64,000 bases of DNA, from NCBI GenBank assembly GCA_052426225.1, contig JBNJNM010000008.1, positions 1,488,001 through 1,552,000 of the forward strand, given 5' to 3'. A program made the translations under genes and the position numbers. The notes under the pieces were generated by a model that had not been told where the DNA came from, searched no databases, and was given only the letters and a program-made list of their open reading frames with translations. This DNA comes from Zancudomyces culisetae HAW-14-8 (Eukaryota > Fungi > Kickxellomycota). Shown in pieces: positions 1 through 22,463 of this stretch (position 1 is the first letter of the stretch; every line of letters starts with the position of its first letter).

Positions 1-220
1 CTTTCATCACTCTGATCTGGTCCCACACTGTCCATCACTTCTAGTTCCGTAATCATTATCCCTTTACTAGTTTGAAACCACTTATCACGTTGATTTGACT
101 GTCTGTTTCTCTTTTCTCTTCCCCCTTCCCTTTTCTTTATCTGCTCTTCTCACACCACTCTTCCCCCTTTCTTTTTCTGTATCTTCTCATTACTTACCGC
201 TCACCTCTCATCGCTCATCG

Positions 221-273
221 CTCACCTCTCACCTCTCACCTCTCACCTCTCACCTCTCACCTCTCACCTCTCA
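221..273. repeat. Heptamer microsatellite (CTCACCT)n in the left arm
   Basis: Visible tandem ctcacct units; the right-arm copy (about 15147..15220) has three more units. Confidence 0.9.
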
Positions 274-799
274 TGTTCCGCTTCTTCATCTTCTCACCCA
301 GGTTTCTGTCTGTTCCTATTAATTGCTATTATTTATAATATTTTATTCCTCTTCAATCACTCTTCTGAATTAGGAAATCGGCTTGCTTTTTTAAACGGTT
401 CTTTTGGCTATTATTTGCATCAATTCTGTACCATTTTTTAAAACACGTTTAATTTGATTATTTTTCACTTGTTTAACCTTTACTCTACACAACTATCCTT
501 AATGGTATAAATAGATAGTATAGCCAGCAGAAATTCTAATTCTAGCTTTAATTTTAGTTCTAATTCTAATTCTAATTCTAGTTTCAATTCCAAGTCCGGT
601 TCTACTTCTAACATTAATTATATCATCAACTCTAACATCAACTCTAAGTCTACTTTTAGTTTACTATTGATCTTGTATTTGTATTATACTCAACAGTTGA
701 TATATCGCAATCGATACAATCATTAACTACTAAAACCATCATTTTAGTATTCTTAGAAACACACTGCAAATATCATAAAAATATTTTATCTATATCAAA

Positions 800-932
800 T
801 ATACAACTATACAACTAAACTACACAACTAAAAACTACACAACTATACACAACTAAACTATACACAACTAAACTATACAACTAAACTATATACAACTAAA
901 CTATATACAACTAAACTATACAACTATATACT
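800..932. repeat. Degenerate minisatellite (CAACTAAACTATA-like) upstream of the arm ORF
   Basis: Tandem caactaaactata(ca) variants, rearranged relative to the copy at about 14505..14620. Confidence 0.8.
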
Positions 933-1026
933 ACAATACCGGTGTATCCCATAAACCCAATTACTCTAGCATCTAGGTAAATACTCAATCTGATCGATAA
1001 AAAACTTGAATATAGTTTGTACCAAT

Positions 1027-2085
1027 ATGAAAATAATCACAAAAGATAAAAGCGTATCACGGTTAAAAAGGATAGCTAAACGAGGCATTAAAGGTGTTCC
1101 AATACAATTTTTGGATGTTTGGAAAATTGGAAAAGGCGAGGAACCCGAGATATCTTTTCAACAGCATTTACCACATTCACCACACTCACCATACCCACCA
1201 TATCCACCATACTCGTCATACTCGTCATATTTATCACATGTGGCATATTCACAATATCCACCATCTTTGCAGCAGCCTTTAACCTTGTCACAGTCATCAT
1301 ACTCATCACAGTCATCGCATTCGTCACAGCCATCATATCAACCACACTCATCACAGTCATCGCACTCATCACCCCTAACCTCACCGATCACTCTAAACTC
1401 ACCACCCATATCAACCCTAGTCCCGGTCCCGGTTCCGGTCCCAGTCCCAGTTTCATCGACCCCAAACCTCTTTACCACTCCAAACCTCTTTACCACTAAA
1501 AACTCTATTCAACCAATCTACAGCCATGACACTATCAAGCGTCTATGGATGTCCAACAAGTCTTCCCGAATACGACGTTCTTACAAAGTGGTTGAGACAC
1601 AATACAATATGCTGAATAGAGTGAAAAACAAATCCAACATACCTGGAACTGGTACGTTCAAATTTATAGAGGGGAAGCGACGAATAATAGTACCAATAGG
1701 AAATGCAGATATGTGCTTAAATATAGGACAAACTGAAAAACAACTGCGCATGTCAAATACTAAAAATACTACAAATACTACAAATACTACAAATACTACA
1801 AATACTACAAATACTACAAATACTACAAGTACTACAAGCAACACCTGTGAAGGAGCAGCTGATGCTGGTGATGAGAACGATGGTAGTGAATACAATAGCA
1901 TACTGGGTAATACTGAGTATAGGGTTAGATGCAAACAGGCAGGAGGAGATGAAGTGTTACCGCTATATAGATCAGAGTGTATTCAACTTGAAGTGGGGAG
2001 TATTGGCAAACCAGAAAATGTGGCGAGCAGACACGTCAAAGACCAGGATCTGCAAAAATGTAGTATCAAATATCTCTTAATGTGA
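1027..2085 (+). CDS. Orphan protein, copy A (about 352 aa): basic N-terminus, S/P/H/Q-rich and TNT-repeat tracts, basic central core, C-terminal CSIKYLL; possible nuclear regulator
   Basis: Open frame with first ATG at 1027. Length differences versus copy B preserve the frame and most SNPs are synonymous (CAG/CAA, ATA/ATC, ACC/ACT, CTG/CTA, TAT/TAC, CTC/CTT, TTA/CTA). No family confidently recognised. Confidence 0.75.
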   Translation: MKIITKDKSVSRLKRIAKRGIKGVPIQFLDVWKIGKGEEPEISFQQHLPHSPHSPYPPYPPYSSYSSYLSHVAYSQYPPSLQQPLTLSQSSYSSQSSHSSQPSYQPHSSQSSHSSPLTSPITLNSPPISTLVPVPVPVPVPVSSTPNLFTTPNLFTTKNSIQPIYSHDTIKRLWMSNKSSRIRRSYKVVETQYNMLNRVKNKSNIPGTGTFKFIEGKRRIIVPIGNADMCLNIGQTEKQLRMSNTKNTTNTTNTTNTTNTTNTTNTTSTTSNTCEGAADAGDENDGSEYNSILGNTEYRVRCKQAGGDEVLPLYRSECIQLEVGSIGKPENVASRHVKDQDLQKCSIKYLLM

Positions 2086-3482
2086 GTGTTATATTATAGT
2101 TTAGAAACTTTTTAAGCGTGATCCAAATTTCGTTTTTTCGAAATAATTTGCAATTAGGTATATGTAAATCAAAACCAATAGTAAGGCTTCCAAGCTTAAA
2201 AATGTTGGTTAGGAGCCTGTGGTAGTTTTGTCTTACTATTGGTGCTTTTTAGTTTTTTTTCATCTATTCTTTTTGCTTTATTTTCGAGATTATAAGGTTG
2301 TACCATTTCAAACACAAACCCCAAAGAATCCATTCAAAGTTAATTAATTAAAAATTCGTGGTAAAAGGAAGCTACCAATTAAAAAGCGACTTGGTGTTAC
2401 ATAGTATTGCATTAATTTTCTATTTTTAAAGCGCGAAGTAAAGATAGCAGAATAAATTGCTTGTTAGCTGTAACAATAGCGCTGGGTGCTACATATTTGT
2501 AGAGAGTTATTTATATTTATTCCTTTGTGAATCTAATGAGGAAATGTTTATGTCAGATCCATTACAGCTAAATCACCAATTTGGTTAGTTTCACTTTCCC
2601 TTTTGCTCACTTCCTAAAGAAGGCAAATTTTAAACAACGTATATTATGATTCTATAATGCAAATTCCAGAACAGGTGTTGTTTGTAATAATATTTATAAA
2701 TACAGAAAAAAAGGAAATTAGTTGTAGTCTGAAAGGGATGATGGAGCGACTTGAAAAAGTTCCTATCGTGCATCCAATCAATTAGCGCGAGTGTAATTAT
2801 ACTTAAAATAAATGATGAATTTGAGAGTGTGGAATGGTATAAGCAGTTTAAAGTAAAAATTGGCTTTGCTACACAGTATTGCATTTCCAAATTTCTTCAG
2901 AATCACTAAGTTTCAAGTGCATATGTAGGCACCTGAAAAAATAAAGTGTGCTGGGTTCATGATTAAAATAATAATTTTTGAAATAAGGGGGAAAAAAGAA
3001 GCAAGCAAGGCATAGGGTTTATATAAATGGGTGTAGTTTAATTAGAAATATGATAAGGGATAAGAGTTTAAACTCAACTTAGATGTAGCTGAAAGCAAGG
3101 TCGAAATAAAACGTGCATAACCAAATTAATAAGGCAAAAAAGTAAAATAAAATAAAGTGAGCTTACACTACCTGCCTCCTAAGTGTAAGCAGTTTATCAA
3201 TTTTCAAAATTCTTAATCAAAATAAACAAAAAGAAAAGGAGCAAATAGTAAATCAAATAATTTTATCGCCAACACTTGGTTTTTTTGTTTCATTTTCGCA
3301 AATTCCACTTACACAATGCCGAGCTGCAAAAAGAAAGAAATGGAAAGGGATAGAAAAATTGTCAGATTTTTGTACAAGCAAACAAAAAATCAAGTTGCCA
3401 TAAATAAATGAATAAACGGCTCTTTAAGCAAATTAATAGATAGCGTTAATATTTATTAGCAAAAACAATCATACACAATAAA

Positions 3483-4498
3483 ATGATTCCACCAAAGTAT
3501 TCTGATGTCTTGAAGCCAGTCAATGACTTGATTGGAAAGGATTTCCCAACTGGATTTGAAAAGCTCGAAATCAAGACAAAGACTAGCAATGGAGTTGTAA
3601 GGAACATTTAGTTTATTTGTTTACATTTACACTATAAAAAAGGAAAGCGAACAAGTGAATAGGGATATTTCGAGGAGAGAGGAGATGGAGGTGTAGGAGT
3701 ACTTACAGCATTGATAGTACTGTTATCTAACAAGCTTTATGGAAAATATAGAAATTTACAGTAAGTGGTACCAGAAACCAAAGCAATGGAATCATCAACG
3801 GAGAAATCAGCGGCAAATACTTTGATGCCCCAAGAAATGTTACATATACTGAAACATTCAATACAGGAAGCATGTACTCACTGCAGATCGAATCAGAAAA
3901 CAACTTTGCCAAGGGCTTGAAGGTAGAAGTTAAGGGCTCAGCCTCAATTAACTCCACCAAGCATGGTTTGGAATCTTCAGCACAATACAAATGCGATGAT
4001 GTATTCGCAACACTGAACTCAGTGATGGTAGGCAAGGCTCCACACGTCAGCAGCAGCTTGGTGATGCACCGTGGTGGATTCTTGGTTGGTACAGAGATGA
4101 GAATGAATCCAGCAGCCAGACAACTCGAGACTGTAGATGCACTTGTTGGATATACAGCCCCTGACTTCCGTGCAGCTGTACAAACACGTGGAACCTTTTC
4201 ATTTTTGACTGCTGCCTTCCACCAAAATGTAACACCAGGCGTGTTGGAGGTGGCTGCCAGAAGCACCTACGATTTGAAGAACTCAGACAAGAACGTGACT
4301 GCCGAGGTCGCAGCCAAATACAACTTGGACAACACAACATTTGTTAAGGCCAGAATCAACAACAACGGACACATGGGATTGTCATACTCACAATCGTTGC
4401 GTCCAGGTGTTACAGCAGTTGTTGGAGCATTGGTTGATGTCAATGGATTGGGCGAAAACAACCACAAGCTTGGAGCCCATATCACTTTTGAATCATAA
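3483..4498 (+). CDS. POR1: Mitochondrial outer-membrane porin VDAC (286 aa); exons 3483-3596 and 3752-4498
   Basis: Exon 1 MIPPKYSDVLKPVNDLIGKDF...KTKTSNGV, gtaagg donor, ctaac branch, tag acceptor. The spliced protein has KARINNNG, LSYSQSLRPGV and the C-terminal HKLGAHITFES typical of VDAC. Confidence 0.95.
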
Positions 4499-4584
4499 AT
4501 TTTCATATCAGTTTATTTTTTGCTTATTTTTTGTTTTAAAAAAATACAGTTGAAATAAAATACTCTAGGCCATGAATAGCCGAA

Positions 4585-5941
4585 CTAAAAAAGAATACAA
4601 TTTGATGGCGACGACTGTTTTCGTTCGGGTTTTCTTGAAGGGTTGCCAGACCTAAATCCGCCGCTAGAAGAGTTGGCATTCCCGTTCTTCTTTCGCTGGC
4701 TGTTGTGTCGAGCGCCTTCAGAGCTGTCTGATGACTGTGGAACACCATAAAGCCCAGATTTACCAGCATTCATTCCTGGAGGTAGTTCTGGATGTGTTCT
4801 ACTTGGATTCTCTGCTTGTTTTTGAAGCGAGAGTGCATACTGGTAGTCTGAATTTATTTGATGCTGCTTATCAGAGCTATGTTTGTTAAACCACTTTTTT
4901 TGCTCTTCGAAATCGTTGCGGACATAATCATTATCGTTTGTCCGCTTGTTTTTGTCAACACTAGACACTGTGCCTCCCTCTTCGAGCATGGGAATAAAAT
5001 TTGAATCCAAAAACTCTGAATGCAATTGATTGACGTCGCTGAGTGTTTCCCACACTATTCGGCTGTCGCTAGCCAAGCTCACGTCAGTACATAGTAAGTA
5101 TAGCTCGTTGTCTCGGCGCTTGTATAGCGTTGAAAAGTGGTTGTTTCGGAAAAACAGGCTTAGATGGTTTTCTGGAATTGATTCCTGCATGATCTGTAGT
5201 CCATAATCCGTAATTTGCGTTGCATTGCTATTCAAAAACTCTCTTATCAACGTAGCACCTTGCATAATTTCCTGGTGTTCTTCCTCGTTCTGCTTGCCAC
5301 ACTCTCCTTGTACCGAGCTCGTAGTTCTGTCCCCAACAGATTCGCCATAAAATACATAGCTCACTGCACCTTCATACGATGTACCACACTTTTGTGTCAA
5401 TATGTTGAATATCTCGCTCTCAGAAATCGGATTTACTACCCATCCATGTACAAAATCCACCTCAAACGCCTTGAATATCAACTCCGCTTCACTATTGGCC
5501 TCTATCCCTCTTATTGAGTCAAAATGTATATTCACATCCAATCCTCTGCTTAGCTCCGGCAGCCGATGTATTATTTTGTCCATTCGTTCAGTGTCTTGCG
5601 TGATTTCCTTTTCATGTGAGTACAAGTAATCCATCAATAGCCCCACCAGCTCGGTTGTCCTTATTTCCTTAGAGGTGTCTTGCTGTTCATTTTTTAGCTC
5701 TATGTCTCCTCGCAAAACCAGTAGATTTATCATGGCTATCAGTGGACATGGTCCATTTTCTATTTTATTTAGCATTATTCCCTCCCTAATAACTATTTGA
5801 CTGTCCCTTCACTTTCGCTATGGAAATACCAAAACGTAAAACCTTACCATTTTGCGTCACTATCCACACTGGCTTTTCGATTTTGGTCTCCAAATCCCTC
5901 CATAGGATTGCCTTAAGTCTATGACTCGCACTCTCATCCAT
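4585..5941 (-). CDS. MINDY-1/2 family K48 deubiquitinase (DUF544), about 422 aa; exons 5941-5848 and 5759-4585
   Basis: Splicing an 88-nt GT-AG intron restores TQNENGPCPL (catalytic Cys). Also HGWV, FFRNNHFSTL (catalytic His), MIU-like SDYQYALSLQ and C-terminal CaaX CILF. Confidence 0.93.
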
Positions 5942-6566
5942 TCTTTCTGTTGCGGTTCGTCCTTGCTCTTTTTCCCCTCTTTTCTCCCTTTTTTCTGTTG
6001 CTTTTGTCTTTTCCGAATTTTACTTTAAATTTTTTAAGAATTTACAAAAATCAGATACAAGATATCCCAGCCCTCTTCAAATATTCCTTTCTATACTCAA
6101 TTGGCACTGTTATCGCTGTTCTGCTAACAACCCCGCTGCTTTTTATTTTTTTGGACTTTTAAAAAGTGGCTACAGTTTTTAGGTTTATGAAGTCATTATT
6201 ATTTTTTGTTGCAAATCCCAATTAATCTGAACCAATTCCATATTAAACTGAATTTGTCTTAGGTAAAAATAACTTTTATCATTGCATTCTAGGTTCAACA
6301 CCCATTTTGGGTTCTGGTTTTGGGAATATTTTCCCCCTCAAATCACGGAAATGGCAAAATATAAAAGTAGCATTTAAAGCAAGTGTGCTGAATTATTATG
6401 ATGCTTCTGCTAGCTTTCTGCTTCACCAACAGTACATATCTAACCAGTGATATGTTGAACTGATTTATTATCCGCATATTATAACCAAACATCTTTAATG
6501 AGCTAAGTGTATAAATTACGATTAATATTAAAGCTCTGCAAATATCCCTAGCTAATACGATAAAAC

Positions 6567-7481
6567 CTAAAATCCTTCAGGGTACATGAACAGTAGTTTT
6601 TGTACCTGTTCGGGATTACGTAGTGCTGGGGGCTGCATCAGTGAAGCCTTGAACATCCCTGAGGTTCCTGTGAATTGTTCAAGGGTCTGCTGATCAGAAT
6701 ACACCTTCTCTACCAAGGCAGGAAGTAAAGAAACCAGCAGCTTATTTGCATTTTCTGAATTCTTCTTCAAAATAGGAAGAACATCCGTGGTACTGACAGA
6801 TGCCTCCTCATCTCTCCAGCTGTCATAATCAGTGGCCATGCAAACCATCTGGTAAGCAATTTCCGCCTCTCGTGCAAGTTTGGCCTCGGGGACAGCCGTC
6901 ATGTTGATAATATCGCCTCCCCATAGCCGATACATTTTGGATTCAGCACGTGTTGAAAACAGAGGACCCTCAATGGCCACAACTGTGCCGCCTTTGATCA
7001 ATTTTATGTTTTCCAGCGCCGCTTCATGAGCCTTTACCAGTTGTGCTACTGGCTCATGGTAAGGATCACCAAATGTCGCGTGGCCTGTTAAACCATTTCC
7101 AAAGTATGTATCCTTACGAATTCCCTTTGTTCTATCAATAATTTGGTCTGGAATCACAAAATCCATAGGTCTAACCTCTTCCCTAAGCGATCCTACCGCC
7201 GAAAAAGCTATCACAACTCTAACTCCTACGTGCTTTAATGCAGCAATGTTTGCCTGGAAGTTTACTTCGGTTGGTAATCGTTCGTGATTCTCACCATGTC
7301 TTGCCAAAAAGGCTATCTTGTGCCCGCTTTCAGTTTCGCTTATAAACAATGGGCTGCTTGGCTTTCCCCATGGTGTATCAATATCTAGCTTAGTTATGGG
7401 TTTCAAGCCTTTCAGGTTGTAAAAACCTGTGCCACCGATTACACCGATTCTTATATCTTTGAATTCTGGATTGACCGACAT
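6567..7481 (-). CDS. MEU1: S-methyl-5'-thioadenosine phosphorylase (methionine salvage)
   Basis: IGVIGGTG, TPWGKPS, FLARHG, FSAVGSLRE, EGPLFSTRAES, INMT..PEAKLAREAE and TDYDSW motifs. Confidence 0.95.
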   Translation of the reverse strand: MSVNPEFKDIRIGVIGGTGFYNLKGLKPITKLDIDTPWGKPSSPLFISETESGHKIAFLARHGENHERLPTEVNFQANIAALKHVGVRVVIAFSAVGSLREEVRPMDFVIPDQIIDRTKGIRKDTYFGNGLTGHATFGDPYHEPVAQLVKAHEAALENIKLIKGGTVVAIEGPLFSTRAESKMYRLWGGDIINMTAVPEAKLAREAEIAYQMVCMATDYDSWRDEEASVSTTDVLPILKKNSENANKLLVSLLPALVEKVYSDQQTLEQFTGTSGMFKASLMQPPALRNPEQVQKLLFMYPEGF

Positions 7482-8228
7482 CCTTTATATTTCCGCTTTG
7501 TGAGTTAGGTACAAAAAAAAATTAAACGTGGTTGCTAGTGACTTAGTACCGTTTTTTAATAGAAAAATTTTTTTCTTAACAGTCTGATGCACAATTTAGT
7601 TGAATCAAAAGCTCAAAAAATGTGAAATGAAATGAACCGAGTCAGCGGATTTTAATGAATATTAACCGATCCTTCTTCGCTACAACTTGACAACTTGAAT
7701 ATTATGAAATATTGAACTGTGGGCATCTCCATTGTCAAAATGATGTGTACTTGAGAGTTATAAAAATACTTTTTTAATGGGTCATTAATTAAAGCCGCTA
7801 TTAATGTATTGTTTATTGATCCACCAGAATAAAATCATAAATGGTGTACATGAACAATAATACGGATGGTATTACAGTACTCTGGTTTGCATTTTGCTTG
7901 TTCTGTGTTTTTATACCGTTGATCTTTAGTTTATGAACACCCCAACCTATGCAAAAGAGACAATAACGGCTCTCAGAAGATGCCTTACCCCAGACTTTTT
8001 ATTTTTTACTTTTATTGAAAAAGAGTTTCATCATCTATGTGGCACTCAAATAACAACAAATACAAAGGATCAAACTTAAAAGATAAAGCTGGATTCAAGC
8101 ACTTAATTTAGCTTAACTTTACTTGTTCTTTAAAGTAATGGCATCATTAAAAGTACTGATGTAATATATAGGTGATGAAAACCCGAGAGATCGGGAAAAA
8201 GAAAATAGGTGTGAGTATTTTATTGTTA

Positions 8229-9110
8229 CTAACGCGGCATATCATAATTGGTGGATAGAAAGTGGGACTCATCAATTACAGTGAAGATATTTCCATCATC
8301 AATAAGAGAATTTGTGGCAGCTCTGATCTGGTTCGGAGATATCTCTGGTGCTAAATCTCTTTCAATATCCTTAATATCAACACCCTGGAGTTTATCTCGT
8401 ACACTTGCAATGTAATCATAGACTCGCTTAACCACAGAGTCTCCACTTCCTCCAACATGGCTGGATTTAGCGTCATGCCCCAACACACCATGGCCAGCCT
8501 TACCACCGCCCATTCCTTTAGTACTTTCTAGGTGTGTTTGTACAACGCTAAGCAAATGATATGTGATTTCGTTAAAATCATTTATTGGAAGTATAGAAAG
8601 AGCCAAAACGTGTCGTTTGTCGTTAAAAAGTTTAAATTCTCCGATAATTCGAACATATTGGTTTGGTTGTATACCTGCCGCTTCATCAGATTCATTATTT
8701 AGATGATTTGCCCATACTTTCACCTCTATAGAACCTGACCCATCTTCGACGGAGTATGTAGTCATTGTAGCTTGCGAATTGATGTTTCTAACAACGCCAA
8801 TCATATACAAGAATTTGATTTCGTTTCCATCAATAACAAAGGGCTTATCAGGATGCTCGGTATCAATTGCCAAAAGTTGTTTGATTGTGACTGGTCGAAC
8901 TGTTTGTTGAGCTATAGCGTCTTTTTTTGCACTTCCAGCTTCAGAGGTAAAGAATCCGCCAGCACTCGCTGCGCCACTACCACCTCCTGAATTCTGACCT
9001 TGATTGAAGTCATTTTTTAATCCCCCCATGCTGTTGGTGTTGTAGTTGTTGAAACCACCATAGGCATTGTAGTTTTGTTCCCCAAATGATTGTGGCCCTC
9101 TTGAATACAT
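8229..9110 (-). CDS. RFA2: Replication protein A 32-kDa subunit
   Basis: Gly/Asn-rich N-terminus with GGF, RPVTIKQL, OB-fold EDGSGSIEVKVW, DFNEITYHLL, and winged-helix tail DGNIFTVIDESHF. Confidence 0.93.
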   Translation of the reverse strand: MYSRGPQSFGEQNYNAYGGFNNYNTNSMGGLKNDFNQGQNSGGGSGAASAGGFFTSEAGSAKKDAIAQQTVRPVTIKQLLAIDTEHPDKPFVIDGNEIKFLYMIGVVRNINSQATMTTYSVEDGSGSIEVKVWANHLNNESDEAAGIQPNQYVRIIGEFKLFNDKRHVLALSILPINDFNEITYHLLSVVQTHLESTKGMGGGKAGHGVLGHDAKSSHVGGSGDSVVKRVYDYIASVRDKLQGVDIKDIERDLAPEISPNQIRAATNSLIDDGNIFTVIDESHFLSTNYDMPR

Positions 9111-10071
9111 TGTTCCTTAAACCGATGCAAAGATACGCACTGTTTTTTTTACCTGTTTGTGATGTTATATAGATTTTTCGAGGTTTGCTGACAGACAATT
9201 GTGTGTGAATATAGAAAATAGTTTATTCCGTGATAAAATGATACAATCAAGTCCCTTACTTCTAATAAATTATGATTGTCTTATTCTTGTGTATAACCAA
9301 GAAGTCAAGACCAAAACGGCTGTTATGTTTTGGATTTGCTTGAGCAAATTTCTAAAAATATTTTTGTTTGTCCAGAAATGTGGGCTTAATGAATTGTTTT
9401 TCTCGCAGGAGCTACCACAAGTCGAAAAAAACTATGAAAATACTGCCAACTTTGCGATACTTATTGAGTGATTACTGGGTGCTTTTGTTTATTCCAATTG
9501 GATTATGGGTTATTTATTCGCAGAAAAACATAACTTGTTCACCATTGGGCTACAAATATTTATGAAATATCCTCGCTTGAGCATTAATTTCCAAGTTTCC
9601 ACCCTTAACTCAAGTTGGTTTTCGATAAAGCTGTTATAATGACAAAAATTTAAGAGGTTTGATTCACAGCAGAAATAAATGAATAAATAACCAAATCATA
9701 ACAATTCGCTCTGGAAGGACAATTTTGTGTTTACAAGAGTAGATTTCAGCAAATACCATTGTCGTGGTTACAAAATCAAATATTTAATGAAACAAATTAC
9801 AAAGGAGAACCAAACGTTCAATAAATTGATTTGTGCGAAACATGAAAAGTCAACACAGAGCAAAATGATGTTAAAGTTTTTGGATGTGTTGAGCTAAAAC
9901 CAATGTTCAGTTTTTGATATCTTTATTTTTTTTTGGGATTTAGTTGGAGCATACAAATAGCATTTAAACTCGGAAAAGCGCGATTTCGTGAACAAAATAA
10001 AGATAAATATTAGAATTTTAGCGAAAACAAAGGGCGAAGCAAACAACCAGGAAGAACTAAAGAGCAAGGCA

Positions 10072-12978
10072 ATGAGCAAGGGATTTGAAAGAAAAGGCCA
10101 TATAGGAAGGGATGTGTTTTTACCAACCAATGCGGACATACCAGGACCAGGACAATACAATCCACAACTAGAAGGATCACAATCATACAAATATTATGGT
10201 TTTCTAAATCGTTCAGAGCGTTTTGGAACAAATAAACACGATCTGGAAGAAGAGGAAAGGTATGAAATGGAAAAACCGGAAACAAGAGGTAATAGATACT
10301 TTGAGTCATACAGAAAAAAGGTAAAGTATGCAGATCCTAAAGAAGAAATAGAGTCTCTTAAAAAGGATATATCTGAATTGGAATCAATACTTTTGAAGCA
10401 AGAAAGCGAAAACAAAAAATTGGAAATGAGAAAAAACAGTAGTGAGAGGGAATTGAAAGAGAAAAGTAAAGAGATTGAGTATCTGGAAAGAAAATTTATA
10501 GAAACGAATGAAAAGATGCAAATTGAATTAGAAAAAGAGACGGAGAGGCAAAATGAACTTATTTCAGAGATCCAAAGGAATTTTATGGAGAAAATGAATA
10601 AAATGGATGCAAGATACAAAAGAGACGTGGAGGTACACAAAAGCGAAATAGAATTGTATATCAGAAAGGAACAAAAAATGAAAAAGGACATCGAAGAGAT
10701 GACATTAAAACATTTGAAAGTGGTAGAGGAAAAGGATGCAATGCTAAAAGCAAAACTTTTAGAGAATAAGCAACTAGCGAACGATTATAATAATATAAAG
10801 CATGAAAATGACATGCATGTTGAACAGCGTAAAAAAATGGAGGCAAAAAGAGCAACAGCAGAAGAGCAATTAGAGAACAAAACAAAAGAGAACTTGGTGC
10901 TACAAAAAAAGGTGGCAGATCTTAAAAGAGAACTGACTAACAAACACGCCGAGCTAATGAGTGGAATTGAGAAAGAGAATGAAGCTTGGGAAAGAAAAGT
11001 GGAGACTATGAGGCTAGAATGTGAAAGAAAAGTTGCAGGCGAGCGTCGAAGAGCCGAAGAGGTGTATAAGGCTGAAAAAGCACGATTGATGAGGGAATTT
11101 GATCAAAAAGCAGAGGCTATAGAAACGAAAATCAAAACTGAAGCACAAATTGAGCTTAAGCGGGCCCTAGAAAGACAAGAGAATCAAACAAAACAACAGG
11201 AGATGCGATACAGAGAGAAACTAGAGTTCAAGACAAAAGAGAACACGCAACTTAATGACGAGCTGGAGAGGCTATCCAGCGAAATTAACCGATTAAACGA
11301 ATTAGCACTAGATCGCCAGGAGCGACTTTTGGCTAGCGAAGGAGAAAAAACACGAATCAAAGCCACATTCAAGACTGAGAAAGAAAAGTATGATGCTGAG
11401 CTAAGGAACAGACAAGATGAAATAAGCAGGCTTATGAAGCTTAAAGACGAGGCAGTAAGTACTAGTATGGATGTACAGGCAAGAACTAATAGGCAACTAG
11501 GCGAACTGAATGCCAATCTAGCCGCGCTGAAGTCGGAGAATACAGTGCTGAAAGCAAAATGTACAAAACTTGATTCAGAGGTCACAAGAGTGAAGTCCGA
11601 ATATAAACGTTCATCAAAAGATCTGGAGAAAACCAAAGCCAAGTTGGAGGAAAACTTCACAGCTGTGGGCCAATTGCAAAGGGAGCTCGAGAACTCAAGA
11701 GACAAAGTTCGTAGATTACAAGATGAACTTGAAGAAGCTAGTAAACTCAGTCTCCAAAAAACAAATAAATTGCAAGAGCTTGAAACTCAAAGTGGTAAAG
11801 GTGTTCAAGAAATGGTTGAAAAATATCAAGCGAAATTAAATAAATATGCTCATGAAATTCAGACTATACGAGACGAGAATAAGAACCTTGCGGCACAAGT
11901 TGATTCAGCAAAGGTAGAAACTATTGGGTATGAAGCGCAGATTAAGAACCTTAAATCCGCACTAGAAAGTACCATTTTAGATCAAACAAAGTCTGAAGGC
12001 GATTTTACCTCTCTTTTGAAGCGGAATACAGGACTGGAAGACGAGAAGGCGGAGATGCAGGTTACATTGATGGACAAAGAGGATGAGATTTCTAAGTATC
12101 GTATGGAACTTAATGATGCCCATTATTCGTTAGAAACGGCTATTTCTGAGCTTGAGCATTACAAAGACCAGCTAGAATCATCAACAATAGCCCCTGTATT
12201 TAAACAAGATATGGCCGAAATTGATATGCTCTTCAAATCGATAGCAGAGCAACTGAAATTGGACGAGTTTTTGACCTCTAATGATTCAGCCATTGACTAT
12301 CACGCTCTGCTTTTGCAAATTTTAACTAAAGTTTACGAGTTAGTAGAACTACCCTCTACACTGGTGGACTACAAAGCCCTCGTTGAGTCGTGTATTTCTG
12401 AAAACTCGGCTTTGAGATCACAAAACGACAAACACCTTAGAAAGCTGGTTGAAGCTGAGCATGATATGTCAGAACTTTTGGAGAAACACGCATGTTTGTT
12501 ATCATCAGCGACCATAGTTACTACAAATTTTGATCAGTTGCTAACTGTTTTTTACAATCTTTTGATATTTCTCAGAACAACTTCCCACAGCATATACTCT
12601 TCTCTGGAGAACCATCTTTTCACTGAGCCGAGAATTCCAAACTACAATCGTGATGATTTTTTAAATAAGTCTTCCGAGACACCCAGTTCCCATCTACATT
12701 TTGTACTTATGGCACTAGCCGAGTTTGAAGCCACCTCTGCTATCTCTGGTGATGCAATTGAACATCTACCCCCACTTCTAGACTCAGACTCTAACAAGTC
12801 AAGGTCTTCAGTTCAGCCTCGCTATACATTTAATTATTTAAAAAAGTTAAAGGAAGAAAATTACAAATTAAAGCTAGATAATAAGCGACTTCAAGGCTTG
12901 GTTACCTCGAAGGAGTCTAAAATACACTCGATCCAACGAGATTTGGACATTTTTAAAAGCGTTTGGGTCGATCGGTAA
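10072..12978 (+). CDS. Long coiled-coil protein, HMMR/RHAMM-like (about 968 aa from the first ATG)
   Basis: N-terminal PGPGQYNP and ERF motif, about 650 aa of heptad coiled coil, and C-terminal YLKKLKEENYKLK resembling the HMMR/KIF15 basic zipper. The CDS is secure; the family call is by motif recall. Confidence 0.7.
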   Translation: MSKGFERKGHIGRDVFLPTNADIPGPGQYNPQLEGSQSYKYYGFLNRSERFGTNKHDLEEEERYEMEKPETRGNRYFESYRKKVKYADPKEEIESLKKDISELESILLKQESENKKLEMRKNSSERELKEKSKEIEYLERKFIETNEKMQIELEKETERQNELISEIQRNFMEKMNKMDARYKRDVEVHKSEIELYIRKEQKMKKDIEEMTLKHLKVVEEKDAMLKAKLLENKQLANDYNNIKHENDMHVEQRKKMEAKRATAEEQLENKTKENLVLQKKVADLKRELTNKHAELMSGIEKENEAWERKVETMRLECERKVAGERRRAEEVYKAEKARLMREFDQKAEAIETKIKTEAQIELKRALERQENQTKQQEMRYREKLEFKTKENTQLNDELERLSSEINRLNELALDRQERLLASEGEKTRIKATFKTEKEKYDAELRNRQDEISRLMKLKDEAVSTSMDVQARTNRQLGELNANLAALKSENTVLKAKCTKLDSEVTRVKSEYKRSSKDLEKTKAKLEENFTAVGQLQRELENSRDKVRRLQDELEEASKLSLQKTNKLQELETQSGKGVQEMVEKYQAKLNKYAHEIQTIRDENKNLAAQVDSAKVETIGYEAQIKNLKSALESTILDQTKSEGDFTSLLKRNTGLEDEKAEMQVTLMDKEDEISKYRMELNDAHYSLETAISELEHYKDQLESSTIAPVFKQDMAEIDMLFKSIAEQLKLDEFLTSNDSAIDYHALLLQILTKVYELVELPSTLVDYKALVESCISENSALRSQNDKHLRKLVEAEHDMSELLEKHACLLSSATIVTTNFDQLLTVFYNLLIFLRTTSHSIYSSLENHLFTEPRIPNYNRDDFLNKSSETPSSHLHFVLMALAEFEATSAISGDAIEHLPPLLDSDSNKSRSSVQPRYTFNYLKKLKEENYKLKLDNKRLQGLVTSKESKIHSIQRDLDIFKSVWVDR

Positions 12979-13341
12979 ACTATTATTTCTAAGTGATGAT
13001 GTGGATATATGAAGATAGTGCCTTTTTTGTACTCATTTTATTCTATAGTTACTAACTATAATTTGATATTAATGTGTTTTAAAAACATGTAGTGTATATA
13101 TTTAATTGGTTTGTTCATGTCGTAGATGCAACCTTTCCCTAAACAATTTGTACTAAATCGATGTTTGTGTGTCATTAATATTTTTATTTATTTCGCTAGT
13201 TAGTTCATGTATCTCAGCTTTGTTCGAGATCGGAAAATAAACAAGTAACACAAGTCAGATAATATCGCCGCTAAAATATGAAATTGTAAGCGTAAAAAAG
13301 TGACCGAAAATAAACATACATACTTAAAACTAATCTAATGT

Positions 13342-14409
13342 TTACTCTAGAAGGTATTTGATACTACATTTTTGTAGATCCTGGTCTTTGACGTGTCTGT
13401 TCACCACATTTTCTGGTTTGCCAATACTCCCCACTCCAAGTTGAATACACTCTGATCTATATAGCGGTAACACTTCATCTCCTCCTGCCTGTTTGCATCT
13501 AACCCTATACTCAGTATTACCCAGTATGCTATTGTATTCACTACCATCGTTCTCATCACCAGCATCAGCTGCTCCTTCACAGGTGTTGCTTGTAGTACTT
13601 GTAGTATTTGTAGTATTTGTAGTATTTGTAGTATTTTTAGTATTTGACATGCGCAGTTGTTTTTCAGTTTGTCCTATATTTAAGCACATATCTGCATTTC
13701 CTATTGGTACTATTATTCGTCGCTTCCCCTCGATAAATTTGAACGTACCAGTTCCAGGTATGTTGGATTTGTTTTTCACTCTATTCAGCATATTGTATTG
13801 TGTCTCAACCACTTTGTAAGAACGTCGTATTCGGGAAGACTTGTTGGACATCCATAGACGCTTGATAGTGTCATGGCTGTAGATTGGTTGAATAGAGTTT
13901 TTAGTGGTAAAGAGGTTTGGAGTGGTAAAGAGGTTTGGAGTCGATGGGACTGGGACTGGGACCGGAACCGGGACCGGGACTAGGGTTGATATGGGTGGTG
14001 AGTTTAGAGTGATCGGTGAGGTTAGGGGTGATGATTGAGGTGAATGCAATGAAGATGATAAGAGTGATGAGTGCGATGACTGTGATGAGTGTGGTTGATA
14101 TGATGGCTGTGATGACTGCGATGACTTTGATGAATGTGATGACTGTGACAAGGTTAAAGGCTGCTGCAAAGATGGTGGATATTGTGAATATGCCACATGT
14201 GATAAATATGACGAGTATGGTGAGTATGGTGAGTATGGTGGATATGGTGGGTATGGTGAATGTGGTAAATGTTGTTGAAAAGATATCTCGGGTTCCTCGC
14301 CTTTTCCAATTTTCCAAACATCCAAAAATTGTATTGGAACACCTTTAATGCCTCGTTTAGCTATCCTTTTTAACCGTGATACGCTTTTATCTTTTGTGAT
14401 TATTTTCAT
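13342..14409 (-). CDS. Orphan protein, copy B (about 355 aa), paralogue of 1027..2085
   Basis: Near-identical inverted copy with intact frame; ends CSIKYLLE. Confidence 0.75.
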   Translation of the reverse strand: MKIITKDKSVSRLKRIAKRGIKGVPIQFLDVWKIGKGEEPEISFQQHLPHSPYPPYPPYSPYSPYSSYLSHVAYSQYPPSLQQPLTLSQSSHSSKSSQSSQPSYQPHSSQSSHSSLLSSSLHSPQSSPLTSPITLNSPPISTLVPVPVPVPVPVPSTPNLFTTPNLFTTKNSIQPIYSHDTIKRLWMSNKSSRIRRSYKVVETQYNMLNRVKNKSNIPGTGTFKFIEGKRRIIVPIGNADMCLNIGQTEKQLRMSNTKNTTNTTNTTNTTSTTSNTCEGAADAGDENDGSEYNSILGNTEYRVRCKQAGGDEVLPLYRSECIQLGVGSIGKPENVVNRHVKDQDLQKCSIKYLLE

Positions 14410-15441
14410 ATTGGTACAAACTATATTCAAGTTTTTTATCGATCGGATTGAGTATTTACCTAGATGCTAGAGTAATTGGGTTTATGGGATACACCGGTAT
14501 TGTAGTATATAGTTGTATAGTTTAGTTGTGTATAGTTTAGTTGTGTATAGTTTATTGTGTAGTTTATTGTGTAGTTTTTAGTTGTGTAGTTTACTGTGTA
14601 GTTTAGTTGTATAGTTGTATATTTGATATAGATAAAATATTTTTATGATATTTGTAGTGTGTTTCTAAGAATACTAAAATGATGGTTTTAGTAGTCAATG
14701 ATTGTATCGATTGCGATATATCAACTGTTGAGTATAATACAAATACAAGATCAATAGTAAACTAAAAGTAGACTTAGAGTTGATGTTAGAGTTGATGATA
14801 TAATTAATGTTAGAAGTAGAACCGGACTTGGAATTGAAACTAGAATTAGAATTAGAATTAGAACTAAAATTAAAGCTAGAATTAGAATTTCTGCTGGCTA
14901 TACTATCTATTTATACCATTAAGGATAGTTGTGTAGAGTAAAGGTTAAACAAGTGAAAAATAATCAAATTAAACGTGTTTTAAAAAATGGTACAGAATTG
15001 ATGCAAATAATAGCCAAAAGAACCGTTTAAAAAAGCAAGCCGATTTCCTAATTCAGAAGAGTGATTGAAGAGGAATAAAATATTATAAATAATAGCAATT
15101 AATAGGAACAGACAGAAACCTGGGTGAGAAGATGAAGAAGCGGAACATGAGAGGTGAGAGGTGAGAGGTGAGAGGTGAGAGGTGAGAGGTGAGAGGTGAG
15201 AGGTGAGAGGTGAGAGGTGAGCGATGAGCGATGAGAGGTGAGCGGTAAGTAATGAGAAGATACAGAAAAAGAAAGGGGGAAGAGTGGTGTGAGAAGAGCA
15301 GATAAAGAAAAGGGAAGGGGGAAGAGAAAAGAGAAACAGACAGTCAAATCAACGTGATAAGTGGTTTCAAACTAGTAAAGGGATAATGATTACGGAACTA
15401 GAAGTGATGGACAGTGTGGGACCAGATCAGAGTGATGAAAG
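13355..15441. repeat. Right arm of the long inverted repeat; outer end probably further right
   Basis: Reverse complement of 1..2072. The outer boundary cannot be fixed because the partner arm leaves the window. Confidence 0.97.
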
Positions 15442-18400
15442 CGGTAAAATGAAAAGTGCAAAGTGGAAAGTGGAAAGTGGAAGGTGTAAAATGTAAAATG
15501 TAAATACGACAGGTAAATGTAACACGCGATAAAAACGGAGAAATGATAATATTGCGATGGGGAAAGCGAAGAGTAAAATTATATGTAATGTAGCTGTATA
15601 ATGCTTGTGTAATGATATCGGGGTAGTTGCAAGGTGGAAACTCAATAATGAACGATGTATTAAGGAGTCCATTAATAGCTATTAGCATAGGAACACTATA
15701 TGTATCACACCCATTTTTGATATTAATTTCGCGATATATTGAAATTGGTCTGATTTCTGCACAATTTTTATGACATATGATTGAATGATATCATATCAAA
15801 CGTTTTTATCATCCTATCATCATGCTGCAATGTTTTGGTATATTTATTCAATTTTGTTTTATTTAAGTGTTAGTGCTGTGTATATCTTTACAAACTTGGA
15901 TATATTAACTGCTCTATTTGGTCATAGTCATGTTTTACACGAGCTTATAAGTAGCTAGTTAGTCTTTAATGATCACAAACTTCAGTATTTGGATAAAAAT
16001 CTTATTTTATTAAATTACTTGAAATGGTATTAGCAAGCTTTCCTGTTTTGGACGGTTTTAAAACTATCCTGAATCACAACTTTTAGTTTTCTGTGATTTC
16101 GATTTACCCAACCAGTAACAAGTATACTTCTTTTGCTTGTAGGAGCTATTGACATTTCCTAAATAAATTGTAGGTCCTTCCAGATGAATATCTGCTCTTT
16201 CTATACATTTGCCTGAGACGTTTTCACCCAAACTAAAATGCTTTTCAATATTCTAATCAACAAACTCGGTTATTATTTTACAATTTTTACCCGTTGATTT
16301 AATAGCAGTGCTCACTTGTTCTGGCAGCAAAGCAATTGTTTTTGAGTTTGATTATCATCAGCGTTTTCCAGGGAAATTTTCTTTAATAACACATTTCTGT
16401 GTTTAATGAAAGTGAAAATCTTTTATATAATTTTGTATCAAGATGGCAAATATCATCTATAAATTTTGGTTTCAAATTTCCCATTTAGGTCTAATTAAAC
16501 TTTTAGTAAAATCAAAACTAGGTTATCGACATTTCAGCTAACAGATTTCACCAGCAGAATCAGCAAGTTGTTTCTACGACGAAAGACACTTTTTGCTTTT
16601 GTGAAAATAACAAATGGCATGGGGCTGTAGTAGTATCACATAGATATGGTCAATTTACTAAAGATTCCAAAATTTACTTATCGAGTTGCTCTTTAACTCC
16701 CAAACCCATTAATTGTTTCCTCTTCCCAATGGTTTCTTGTCAGGTAAGCTCAGCACAAACTGTTATAATTCTAGAATTATCATTTCAAAGAACATTAACC
16801 TTGTTGATAAATGACTCACACTGCGGCCATATTACACTGTTTATAGATTCTTTTTAGTCAATATGGTCATTCTACGTTGTTCAGTATCTTCCTCTTACTT
16901 CAAAGAAAGCCTAAATCTGCATTTGCGGCATTCCTATTCTGCTTTGAGAGATTATTGATTATTTTATTATTGGGTGCTTACCAGCTTCACAGTATTTTAT
17001 CAAATTACGTGGTTCTGTAACATTGTACATATTTGTAATTTCATCTTCGAAATTAGTATACATACAACCAATTATGGCGAAAGTTCTACAAAAAGGCGGG
17101 CAAGTGAGTTTATGAGGGTTGTTGGTGATGTTAATGTGTACTAAAACATTTAACTTCTGTGACCACACACAACTATATGCCGCTTTCACATTCAAATGTG
17201 GCTAAATGTAATTTTTTTGGGGCCGAGTTTTTTTGAAGCGGGCCAAACTAAAAAATTTATTTGACGGTTACAACCAATTTGTGTTCGAAAAACCATATAG
17301 CACAATATTCAGCTAAACACTTATATTACACTAACAGGGAGAGAGGAAAGGAAGGAATGTGTATATTGAAATAGTGTAATTAGCATCTTTTTTACATTAA
17401 TGTACTATCTAAACCCTCCGAAATGACATAAGCTAAAAACCACTATCTGTCCCGTAGAGGCATAGATACTGTAATAACAAGGTCTATTAATACATTAAAA
17501 ATTTGTATGGACTGATTTTTAATTGCCATTTATGATTGCATGAGTGTTAGATTACTTACTTAGAAACATTGCGCTAAATTAAAAAAAGATAGGGGTAGTT
17601 TAACTAGATCTAGAAAGTTCCCACATGTAGTACACTATAATGAGTAAAAAACATTCTACAACTGGATGTTAGTTTTTAAGAATCGAAATAAAACACCATC
17701 GAACACACCGACTAAAAATAGAAGGATGAGACATGTTACGCAATTTCCGAATTGGCTCTTAGTTGTAAAATGAACATTGATCATGATATTTTCGACCCCA
17801 TTAGCTAGCTATAGAACCGCAACAACTGCTGGAGCAGGTGATGCATCAATGGGTTTATACGCTTTCATCTTTAGTGATTGTTATTAAAAGGCTTTTTTCC
17901 TTTTGTTTCAAAAAGAACAGGAGCTGAAAGGATTCAACAAAACATAGTAATTCACATGTAGTTCTGCAAAAGAGGCACATACTGGGAAAAAAGCATAATT
18001 GAACTAAAAACCTTCTGTGCTTATTTATTATGAAATTACAGCTAGGACGTTTTTTTATTTTTAAGCTTTTCATGAAAATGCGGATAAAAAAAATTCCGAT
18101 TTTCTTACTGTGTTTTGCTCTTCTTACTGTACAAGTGGTAATAAATGTTGTATTGATTGATTGTTTTGGTTGTGTAATATTTTTTTTGCCGGTCTTACCT
18201 TCATAACTTAGTCTATATAAATGTTGTTTATAGTGTGAATGTTGCTCAATTCTTTCTACTGGTACAATAAACAAAAGCAGTAGTGGCTGATTTACTATGG
18301 ATCTTAGTAACCATCGGTTATATCGAAGTATTTTACTGAATCAATTTAGAGAAGAGTTAGGTTGGATTGATAAAAAAGCTGAAAATAACACTTTAGGTAT

Positions 18401-19426
18401 CATACTAAACACTTGTACAGAAAGTATTGCATTTTAATATGACAACAGTAGCATTTACTGTACATTCTCACAATCATGTGATTTGTGTATCATCTAGTCT
18501 TTTTTTTCCTGCTTTTTTGGTCTTACATGCGCTTTCTCAGGATGTGTAAAAAGAACTAAAATGAGGTATGAGTCAAGATGATTCATTTCGTCTACCAAGG
18601 GAATTCGTGGCTCAATTTTTTATTCCAGTGTTATTGGAATGCATGGTGAGGTGTTATATCGATTGGGATATTCAATTATAATCGAAGAGGATATATTGCT
18701 CCAAATTCTTCCGCGTTACCCACAAAATCCAGAGTATTTAATTTTTTGTGAAAAGAGAGGCAAGTGCAGAAAAACCGAAAGGATATAGATATTTCTATCC
18801 CTTAAACATGTTGTTGAGCGAGTATATTTTAGTTTCCAATAACAAAGGTGTTATAGCTACGGCCTGTAGTTGAAATGTGCAAAATAAACTACAACACACT
18901 CTTTTCTATTTATTTAGAAACAAAGCAATCTATATTGAAGATGCAATAACTATTCAAAGGGTTATATGGGGCACATAAAAGGTAAGTACGGTAGATTCAT
19001 CCTACCCCCTCCTCCTTTTTCGATAGCTTACAATGAGCTTGGTGTATCAATTCTATACTTACACTGCTCAATAAAAAAGATAGTGTACTGATTCATTTAT
19101 ACGCTCCCTTCAAAAAAATGTTGGGTATAAGATACATGTAAGTATTATTGTCACGTGGTTGTGCTATGGGCGTCTTACGACTCCTTTGTTTTCATGGCGG
19201 TATCAGAGCTAACTGAAAACTTGTAGGGCGATTGTGTCAATTGGTATATCCGATTGGTGAGAAAAAAGGAATCAATAATATTTATTGTGAATCGATAGAA
19301 GAGAGAGTAGGAGTGACTGAAGAGGATGGACGGGTGATTGATGGGGAAATGGATTCTGCCGTGTTTTGTTGTAAGTTAGATCACGTTTTGCAATTGTTGT
19401 TTTTGGAAAAGAAGCACAATGGTAGC

Positions 19427-19461
19427 GGCTGTCGGCTGTCGGCTGTCGGCTGTCGGCTGTC
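19427..19461. repeat. Heptamer microsatellite (GGCTGTC)5
   Basis: ggctgtcggctgtcggctgtcggctgtcggctgtc read directly. Confidence 0.9.
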
Positions 19462-22070
19462 ATCTACCAATACCGAAGCTGGTGCTATAAACCGTTGTTG
19501 TCTTGTTTTAAATAGGGGAGTACGACCAAGACGAATCATAACATAAGGTTATCGGGCTGCGTTTTTTGGGAATTCCGTTTTTTGGTTGGAGCACAGTATT
19601 TTTGTTCTGATTATGATCAGCAAAGAAAAACACAATTTTGTTTTATCGGACATACACGAGGTCACAAGACCGTGCTATATAAATCACCAAACGAAATCCT
19701 TGAAGAAATAGGCACAATTGAAGGGAGGTGAGAGGGGTGGAGTGGAAGATGAGATATGGTTGGGATATTGGGTTCTCAATGTCCAGAAGTTTTTCACTTT
19801 TCTACTTTTTTTTCAGGAAGGGAGGGGGGAAACAGTGAGGTGGTAAAGCAGTGAGGTGGTAAAGCAGTAAATCACAGTAAAAAAAGAAAAAAAAGATATG
19901 GAATGAGCATACTCATTTTTGAGAAATCACACCAGATTTGGAATGGCTTATTTGAGGGGTTTACACAATTTTGTCCGTGATGTCGTGGCATGTTTGACTT
20001 GCCATTGAGCATTGTTATTGTTTATATTTTTTTATAATCCCAATTACTTTCTCATTATAAAAGTTTTGAACTCGTGACCAAACTGTATGGGGAAAAGCAA
20101 AGCTTGTGACCAAGCTGAACTGCGAACAAGAAGGCCCAAAAAACCAATTGTGGGGAATGTGTGTGCATCATTAAAAATCAAGTTGGTGAAAGAATGTGTG
20201 GTTTTCGAGTTTTACTGGTCAATTTGAAATGGCATTTGTAATTATTTTGCGGTTTTTCTTTGTTTTTCTGTTATTTTTATCGCAAAAAGCGTAGCAACAT
20301 TGGATATTACTAAATATTCGAACAAATTCTTAACGGCTTCTTTTCGCTCATTGACGTAGAATATTTAGAAAAAAACTTTTTTAGCTGCGCACAAATGAAG
20401 CATTACAAATGCATACTGGTTTTTTTTTGGCAGAAATTGAATGAAAGGTGACAGAAAAGCGCAAAGCAGGAATTATTGGATGAAAGATAGGTGGAGATGA
20501 CTCCAAATAGCAAATAGCTAGCATTTGACAAAACTCCAAACAATGCTATTGGATTTGGTATCAAACATGTTTCAGATAATTTCAATCCAGGCTTATGGGC
20601 GGTGGAACTAGAAAAACTAAAAAAAATTAAAAAGAATCAAATTGGCCAAAATACCCAAGTTTTCGCAAATCCATGCTCTTTACACTGCCTTGTATGAAGG
20701 GCTATACTGTGGTAGCAAATCACAATAGAATAATTTCGGGTTTTCGTGCAGTCAGGTTTTGTAGATTGCTGTGTGTAGCAAGAATAAAACTAGGAAAATA
20801 TTTTGCAGATATTCATTCGCTAGAAATATTGGTGACATTTTAAGATGCATTTGCTCGATTGGAAAAGCAAAAAAATTTTTTAAACCGAAACCAAATAAAA
20901 ACGCAGTAAGTGCTAATAGTGAGAAACTTGTGGGTTTATTGGATAAGATTTCGTCTAGATACGTTTTTTTATTTTAGTGATAAATTGAGACGTTTTATTA
21001 AGAGCAAAAAACTCAACAACTTTTCTTTATAGTGGTGCCATTGGGTAGGAAATATAGTGCAAAGTAGATTTTAAAGGGATGCATAATGGGTTTTGGGCAT
21101 TCCGTATATTTTCATTTTTTTGTTTCTATTGCAAAATAATAACGTTATATAAAAAAAATTTTTCTTGTAAGGTGATTCGTGAAGCTTAATTTTTGGGTAT
21201 ATTTATGGGCAAATCAAATAATAGAATTGATAACAAGTTGTGAATGCAAATGGGTTTTATTTTTTTCATGATTGACTTCAATAATTAGCATGAAAGATTG
21301 CAATAAAATTAACAAAAAGTTAGCATCTGTTGATTGAGAAGATAACCTGTGTTTTTAGTGACCCTTTAATTGTTGGGGGGGTAGAGGGATGAGGGGCAAT
21401 GGGAGAGAGGAGAAAGGAATTGATGTGGAAAGTTAAGGAAAATGGTGCGAAAAAACATGGGCTTTCTTTAATTACTAATTGATTTATTTGCATTTGAAAT
21501 GGTGGAAAACAGTTTTTTTTTGTCAGACAAGTCTGGTTCACAATGGTTTTTTGTCATTTTTTTAAAAAGATCTATTCTTAAGAAAAAAAAGGCACAGCAA
21601 AATTTCTTGGAAGGCTATGGTCAGCAGCCGCAAAAAAAAAAATCCGCTTTGTAATAAAGTGTTGGCAAAAAAAAAAATGACAAAATAGCTTACTAAAAAA
21701 AAAAGGAAATGGGGAGTAGGGAATAGGGAAAAAGGTGGTTTCAAAAAGAAGTCATTACAAATTAATTTTATACGCCAATATTTGTCCAAGCTGCGTAAAG
21801 AAATAAAAAAATCAAACATATAAGAGCTACGTGAATAAAATATAAGAAATAAGTAACCACTAAACACTACTTTGTAAAGGTACACCAAATCTCTGAGATA
21901 GTATTTAACTCTTTTTTTTTGTATTTTGTGGGTTACAATCAGATACAACAAACAGTGAACATACTTGCTCCAGAAAGCTGCGGAAACAGTATTGATTACG
22001 AATAAAAGACAAAAAAAAATAGTTCTTGAAAGAATTGCGCAAGATTAAAAGCATTTTAAGCGATTAAAAG

Positions 22071-22144
22071 GTAAGACTTTTTGTTTTTGGAGACATAATA
22101 AAGAAGATAGACACTAACACGTTTTTGTTTTCATATAAATATAG
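22071..22144 (+). other. Probable 5'-UTR intron of the cyclin gene (74 nt)
   Basis: AAAG|GTAAGA donor, ACTAAC branch at 22113-22118, pyrimidine tract and TAG acceptor, 320 nt upstream of the ATG. Confidence 0.6.
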
Positions 22145-22463
22145 GATTAAATAACCTAAGAGAAACAAATACTAGAAAAAAGATTTACTTGTACTAAAAG
22201 AAAAAATGTTTTAATTAATTTCCGACTTTGGAATAAGAAAGTTAAATACGAACTAGAATAAACAACAATAACTTGAACAAAAAAGGCAACCGAAATAAAC
22301 AACCAACCAGACCCAAACGAGGATAAGAACTGAAGGCGAAAGTAATCAGTAACAACCAAAGTTAAGATAAAACAAAACCGAAACAACAACGTCAAAGTGA
22401 AACTCAAATTGAAATCCAAAAGGAAAAGGAAGAAAAAGAAAAGGAAAAAAGGGGGGACATAAA

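Follow-up and report, generated by a model that had tools for sequence, protein, structure and literature searches.

Recombination between the arms of a palindrome within one chromatid inverts the spacer that lies between them. In the palindromes of the primate X and Y chromosomes (PMC8327919, PMC8600007), two inverted arms, present as one pair, surround a unique spacer; gene conversion keeps the arms closer to each other within a lineage, the paired genes are intact and under purifying selection, and the spacer toggles by recombination of the arms without a dedicated recombinase. The orientation of the spacer differs in about half of the between-species comparisons of primate X palindromes (PMC8327919). 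In the FF1/FF2 switch of Ogataea polymorpha, Komagataella phaffii and Ascoidea rubescens, a chromosomal segment bounded by inverted repeats of about 2 kb can invert by homologous recombination, and strains of Ascoidea rubescens differ in its orientation (PMC6692504). Here we analyze a locus of HAW-14-8, a strain of Zancudomyces culisetae, in which inverted repeats bracket an 11.3-kb block of five genes, at the start of a stretch of 64,000 nts (contig JBNJNM010000008.1, abbreviated C8, positions 1488001-1552000) that we call the window. Zancudomyces culisetae is a mosquito-gut fungus. The original prediction for this DNA, made from the sequence of the window, was that the block may exist in both orientations. 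The explanation we consider probable is an old inverted duplication, with gene conversion from arm to arm and a passive inversion that probably took place between isolates.

Coordinates refer to the window, with negative coordinates counting bp to the left of its start. As in the primate palindromes, two inverted arms surround a unique spacer and are present as one pair. A repeat search inside the window identifies five collinear inverted blocks, 94-100% complementary, between 1-2096 and 13331-15441. After adding 10 kb of sequence to the left of the window, one BLAST alignment pairs -273..2075 with 15727..13352 over 2,418 columns, 93.0% identical counting gaps, with 58 mismatches and 29 gap openings. 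The repeats of at least 2 kb proposed around the block are present, and reading to the left places their outer end. Each arm is about 2.35 kb long, which is larger than the part visible inside the window: the left arm (forward strand) occupies 1..2075 of the window and has its outer end at -273 (C8:1487727), and the right arm (reverse strand) occupies 13352..15727. An alignment of the arm edges shows that homology fades within about 25 bp beyond 2075. The spacer, which is the candidate invertible block, comprises the unique sequence 2076..13351. When the arms are aligned with MAFFT, 55 substitutions separate them, along with 7 indel events located in tandem repeats; identity by substitutions is 97.6% overall and 98.8% in the core. 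Between the two arms there are runs of 504 and 244 bp without a difference.

In a search of the whole HAW-14-8 genome (27.1 Mb in 25 contigs), there are two full copies of the arm, both at this locus, and the other matches are a few low-complexity pieces of 40-90 bp. A dispersed element or transposon was considered as an identity for the arm and rejected, given two copies only and no transposase. About 660 kb separate the locus from the nearer end of its contig. The assembly fits the one built from PacBio HiFi reads (PMC12611240), and it presents the block in a single orientation without an alternative contig.

Apart from HAW-14-8, the species has one public assembly, that of isolate COL-18-3 (GCA_001969505.1), in which contig LSSK01000825.1 carries one arm. 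In a three-way alignment of the two HAW-14-8 arms and the COL-18-3 arm, we count divergence over clean columns, that is, after removing tandem repeats and gap-adjacent columns. At the outer edge of the arm (-270..-140), the left and right arms of HAW-14-8 differ at 13.7% of sites, the left arm differs from COL-18-3 at 1.5%, and the right arm at 13.0%. In the core (-139..2075), the two HAW-14-8 arms differ from each other at 1.2%, and from COL-18-3 at 3.6% (left) and 3.4% (right). At the edge the arms act as orthologues between strains, and the closest kinship in the core is between the two arms of one strain. Near-identity outside microsatellites, as originally described, is correct for the core and does not extend to the outermost 130 bp. 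The pattern is that of concerted evolution, in which arms are closer within a lineage than between lineages and the older divergence is kept at the edges, and it is shared with the primate palindromes. Because the edge gives 13.7% against 1.5% and the core 1.2% against 3.4-3.6%, the duplication is far older than the split of the strains, and its core has been repeatedly homogenized by gene conversion between the arms, also after the separation of the isolates, which are about 1% apart. A stretch with low divergence between the HAW-14-8 arms, -24..725, has one substitution in 511 clean sites, compared to 11 in 877 further in (P about 0.01), which is suggestive of a recent conversion tract. At -125..-96, the arm attached to the left flank in COL-18-3 has variants of the right-arm type, a 12-bp indel among them; this shows a conversion tract of independent origin, and therefore a right-type donor arm existed in the history of COL-18-3.

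Unique DNA beside the arms differs between isolates at 0.5-0.6% of sites (14/2597 and 61/10001). Comparing the arm with this adjoining DNA gives an odds ratio of 6.3 (p=2e-20). Divergence between the isolates is about sixfold higher in the arms than in the unique DNA that touches them. Conversion that proceeds independently in each isolate, or mutagenic recombination, makes the gene contained in the arm a local hotspot of divergence between strains.

This arm gene is present in both arms, with the two copies facing inward, as had been noted originally. The left copy (1027..2085, forward strand) encodes a protein of 352 aa, and the right copy (13342..14409, reverse strand) one of 355 aa; both are identified from their open reading frames (ORFs) and an alignment of three protein copies, the third from COL-18-3. 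The proteins are rich in S, P, T and N and contain in-frame tandem repeats. The right and left proteins are 97% identical, and they differ by in-frame changes in repeat length of 27 and 36 nts and in the last residue, which is M or E depending on the copy. The stop codons lie about 10 bp past the end of the high-identity arm, and the 3’ untranslated regions (UTRs) are in the unique spacer. The arms also include the upstream non-coding DNA of the gene, 1..1026 on the forward strand of the window and about 1.3 kb in total with the 273 bp to the left, rather more than the 1 kb first estimated from the window. This part of the arm is dense in tandem repeats with units of 6-43 nts.

The arm ORF behaves as a real gene, judging by its substitutions, because the ratio of nonsynonymous to synonymous divergence (dN/dS) is 0.25-0.30 among the two HAW-14-8 copies and the COL-18-3 copy, and because all indels among the three copies are 9, 27 or 36 nts, that is, multiples of three. 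The ORF is thus under purifying selection with a preserved reading frame, and intact paired genes under purifying selection are another property of the primate palindromes. Between isolates, the synonymous divergence (dS) of this gene amounts to 0.10-0.13. We find no Pfam family for the protein even at E<=10, and the HMG_box family specifically has no match at that threshold. A HMMER search of 1.84 billion representative proteins reports one marginal match (E=3e-4), to a protein of 2,751 aa. Look-alikes in a protein atlas do not exceed a score of 0.82, at the level of noise; the AlphaFold model is too poor to use (predicted local distance difference test, pLDDT, of 31); and a metagenome scan finds no arm relative and no third arrangement of the locus. 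The COL-18-3 arm protein is absent from the clustered protein collection. By these comparisons, the arm gene is an orphan specific to Zancudomyces and to this species.

The evidence on the orientation of the block comes from COL-18-3. In contig LSSK01000825.1, the left flank (-8951..211, on the same strand) leads through an arm into the spacer, which is entered from its right end (14624..3174). The left flank is joined via the arm to the right end of the block, so that the spacer is reversed relative to the left flank and the junction is the opposite isomer to that in the HAW-14-8 long-read assembly. The contig contains no N. We regard a real difference in block orientation between HAW-14-8 and COL-18-3 as rather likely, because assemblers mostly break at repeats that they do not resolve and because frequent conversion implies occasional crossovers, to be set against the risk of a misjoin. 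The flipped junction is probably real, and crossovers probably accompany the conversions. The prediction that both orientations may exist is partly supported by the flipped junction in the COL-18-3 contig, with the reservation that this is one short-read junction for which a misjoin is possible.

Several observations weigh against an inversion, and most of them favor an alternative in which the inverted duplication is static: conversion occurs, both isolates have the same orientation, and the LSSK01000825.1 junction is a short-read chimera. The flipped state depends on a single junction in an assembly that Ray built at 26x coverage from reads of 2x150 bp and inserts of 500 bp (PMC5026252). If the COL-18-3 arms resemble each other as closely as those of HAW-14-8, which are identical over stretches of 504 and 244 bp, a switch by the assembler from one arm to the other would have been possible. 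The reciprocal junction is not found in COL-18-3: LSSK01000825.1 ends at 3174, and the right-flank contig LSSK01000900.1, which we reached via the cyclin orthologue, starts at 19195, 3.5 kb short of the arm. Exact look-ups of the methylthioadenosine phosphorylase (MTAP) of the block, the cyclin of the right flank and two further right-flank ORFs give no match. COL-18-3 has one arm-gene copy on record, on one contig, as if the second arm had been collapsed or fragmented. HAW-14-8, with one orientation in its assembly, gives no indication of frequent flipping, which speaks against frequent flips and may leave room for rare ones. A static duplication has difficulties of its own, however. Assemblers usually break at unresolved repeats instead of reading through 2.35 kb, the contig has no N in it, and frequent conversion makes occasional crossovers likely. 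We consider the static duplication possible although doubtful. Another alternative is an artefact in the long-read assembly, either a false duplication or a misoriented block. We consider it extremely unlikely, since the arms differ by 55 substitutions and 7 indels at fixed sites and in a graded pattern, HiFi reads are far longer than the 2.35-kb arm (PMC12611240), and the independent assembly of the other isolate carries the arm together with both adjoining unique sequences.

There are two further alternatives. Drosophila inversions can be flanked by inverted duplications produced by staggered breaks, in which case the uninverted lineage should have a single copy and the arms should be no older than the inversion. 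The Zancudomyces locus resembles these in having a gene-bearing inverted duplication at both ends of a segment whose orientation apparently differs between lineages. An inversion in HAW-14-8 only, by staggered breaks and fill-in, would leave COL-18-3 with the ancestral single-copy order (left flank, arm, coiled-coil gene through to VDAC, right flank), and would account for a short-read assembly passing uninterrupted through the arm; it is true that the COL-18-3 contig is in the predicted ancestral order and that one arm-gene copy is on record. The outer 130 bp argue otherwise: a divergence of 13.7% between the arms against 1.5% between the left arm and COL-18-3 amounts to a roughly tenfold excess at the arm edges over the divergence of the two strains, and means that the duplication predates the split by about that factor. 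The right-arm-type variants near the outer end of the COL-18-3 arm also need a right-type donor. On these two grounds we reject an inversion restricted to HAW-14-8, which we take to be very improbable; a staggered-break origin in the common ancestor is possible. The other alternative is a programmed flip-flop switch, comparable to those of methylotrophic yeasts or to phase variation in bacteria, in which a regulated inversion would shift the arm genes or the block with respect to a silencing region and so alter their expression. In its favor, Ogataea, Komagataella and Ascoidea also use inverted repeats of approximately 2 kb (PMC6692504), a tract of 6.7 kb without a recognizable gene lies beside one arm only, and the second isolate has the opposite junction. 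The FF1/FF2 systems, in which one copy of the repeat adjoins a transcription-repressing centromere or telomere, differ from this locus in other respects. Here there are no mating-type (MAT) genes at the ends and no gene with an expression state to change, no centromere or telomere is recognizable beside an arm (the centromeres of the species are not defined), and a complete gene, promoter included, is present in each repeat. By Pfam, the ORFs of the arms, spacer and flanks include no recombinase, integrase, transposase, HMG or homeodomain protein. Genome-wide there are 18 HMG_box matches, the nearest at C8:585 kb, 900 kb away, and seven Homeodomain matches, none of them on contig C8. No DNA-binding domain is detectable in the arm protein. 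The flanking tract occurs once in the genome, has an ordinary base composition and contains neither transposon nor satellite sequence. The contig end is about 660 kb away, and inverted pairs on the kilobase scale are common in the vicinity, which makes the architecture generic. In addition, each arm carries the whole promoter and ORF, and a flip has almost no coding consequence because of it: both arm genes keep promoter and ORF either way, which leaves nothing obvious to switch. The exchange of the 3’ ends and UTRs of the arm genes that had been anticipated is limited by the edge alignment to the last codons and 3’ UTRs. Also different are the invertible segments of the Hin/Gin type or of the 2-micron FLP system, as no recombinase gene is found in or beside the Zancudomyces segment. 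A programmed switch is, in our view, highly unlikely. Nothing indicates one, and any inversion would be passive. The original prediction had already observed that the block includes no recombinase or recognizable MAT gene and that an inversion could be passive, and both points are borne out; the likeness it drew to mating-type switching in yeasts is not. The locus has no bearing on mating-type biology.

The explanation that we favor, an old inverted duplication with conversion and passive inversion, would operate as follows. An old local inverted duplication of the Zancudomyces-specific gene and its upstream region of about 1.3 kb would have created a small palindrome with a spacer. The 2.35-kb arms would pair and copy sequence into each other, which would keep the core and both gene copies alike, while the arm edges, rarely reached by the conversion tracts, would drift apart. 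The same pairing, when resolved as a crossover, would invert the 11.3-kb spacer, and this probably happened at least once since HAW-14-8 and COL-18-3 separated, which would leave them in opposite orientations. The process would be passive, using the general recombination machinery and no dedicated recombinase. By analogy, the closest mechanism appears to be that of the palindromes with spacer of the mammalian sex chromosomes, although the locus is too small for the mammalian size definition. The primate arms extend from more than 8 kb to megabases with more than 99% identity, whereas here they have 2.35 kb and about 98.8% identity in the core. The Zancudomyces locus is found among housekeeping genes of a fungal chromosome, and its spacer, with 11.3 kb and five genes, is much longer than its arms. 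In the primate palindromes toggling of the spacer is established, and in Zancudomyces an inversion is probable.

We mapped the limits of the spacer genes from the COL-18-3 gene calls. From left to right, the spacer contains a VDAC (eukaryotic porin) gene at 3483..4498 on the forward strand (Pfam Porin_3, E=8.7e-35); a MINDY deubiquitinase gene at 4585..5661 on the reverse strand (MINDY_DUB, E=4.3e-67); the MTAP gene, of the MEU1 type, at 6567..7481 on the reverse strand (PNP_UDP_1, E=1.1e-40); the gene for the 32-kDa subunit of RPA, RFA2, at 8229..9110 on the reverse strand (RPA_C and an OB fold); and an ORF for a coiled-coil protein of 968 aa (968-996) at 10072..12978 on the forward strand, originally labeled HMMR-like, for which no Pfam family is above the cut-off. 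The Pfam matches agree with the names first given to VDAC, MINDY, MEU1 and RFA2. An exact look-up finds the RFA2 protein identical in HAW-14-8 and COL-18-3. Substitutions between the isolates amount to 0.61% in the spacer, versus 1.17% in the left flank and approximately 1.0-1.1% in the right flank, and none fall in the 373 bp that separate the right arm from the coiled-coil gene. To the left of the repeat are an importin-alpha gene and a Gly/Ser/Tyr-rich gene of 307-312 aa. To the right, the tract without a recognizable gene adjoins the right arm (15728..22463); it is single copy in the genome, with a GC content of 0.32-0.36, and a PHO85-type cyclin gene follows it. We find no tRNA or Rfam RNA genes in 1-23000. 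The cyclin neighborhoods of Smittium simulii and Furculomyces boomerangus have no gene in common with the Zancudomyces locus, and synteny with these outgroups did not polarize the orientation of the block. There is little local synteny between Harpellales genera around the PHO85-type cyclin.

A self-comparison of 274 kb of contiguous sequence around the window detects four inverted pairs with a length of 500 bp or more, whereas dispersed direct pairs, counted from 300 bp upward, are absent. Apart from the locus itself, one pair (C8:1328957-1331101 and 1347003-1349146) consists of copies of 2,146 bp, 99.4% identical and 15.9 kb apart, about 140-159 kb to the left of the window. Each copy has a 206-aa ORF that matches the DDE_3 (Tc1/mariner) transposase, and there are retrotransposon-like ORFs between and beside the copies, so this pair is a transposon-rich patch and not a segmental duplication. 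Another pair (C8:1313144-1313837 and 1337685-1338367; 698 bp, 82% identical, with a 23.8-kb spacer) is interleaved with the transposon pair. The remaining one (C8:1356538-1357061 and 1360243-1360766) has 524 bp, 96% identity and a 3.2-kb spacer. Local inverted duplication looks favored in the Z. culisetae genome, and since an architecture of inverted pairs is generic in it, the passive reading of our locus is favored too.

The 524-bp pair could not be used for calibration, as the only COL-18-3 contig found for it is 82% identical over 1.1 kb and represents a non-orthologous site. That contig, LSSK01001734.1, aligns to C8:1354488-1355650 and then diverges completely. The comparison includes a 184-aa ORF with a hydrophobic, signal-like N-terminus and three Z. 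culisetae relatives at 59-97% identity. From these features, we describe the family as a small set of putatively secreted proteins, in a region that appears structurally different between the isolates. On a larger scale, HMG-box matches occur in pairs with identical scores and near-identical frame lengths (C6:2433736 with C12:429526, and C6:2785589 with C12:87900); the pairs are approximately 350 kb apart on both C6 and C12, and their order is opposite. C6 and C12 may have a segment of about 350 kb in common, either a large inverted duplication or a haplotig that was not collapsed. A more general proposal, that the block toggles measurably within cultures and between isolates and is one of a set of palindrome-like cassettes, distributed across the Z. 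culisetae genome, that shelter young species-specific genes by gene conversion in the manner of sex-chromosome palindromes, seems to us improbable.

Independent conversion can speed the evolution of an orphan gene between strains while both copies within a strain stay alike. If the flip is confirmed, short-read assemblies of Z. culisetae would not be trustworthy across such repeats. Genome dynamics are, to our knowledge, almost unstudied in Zoopagomycota, and a confirmed flip would provide a small, clean and experimentally tractable case, in an early-diverging fungus of this group, of inversion mediated by repeats and of concerted evolution. If the block toggles recurrently, inversion would regularly generate structural variation in an early-diverging fungus that lives as a gut symbiont.

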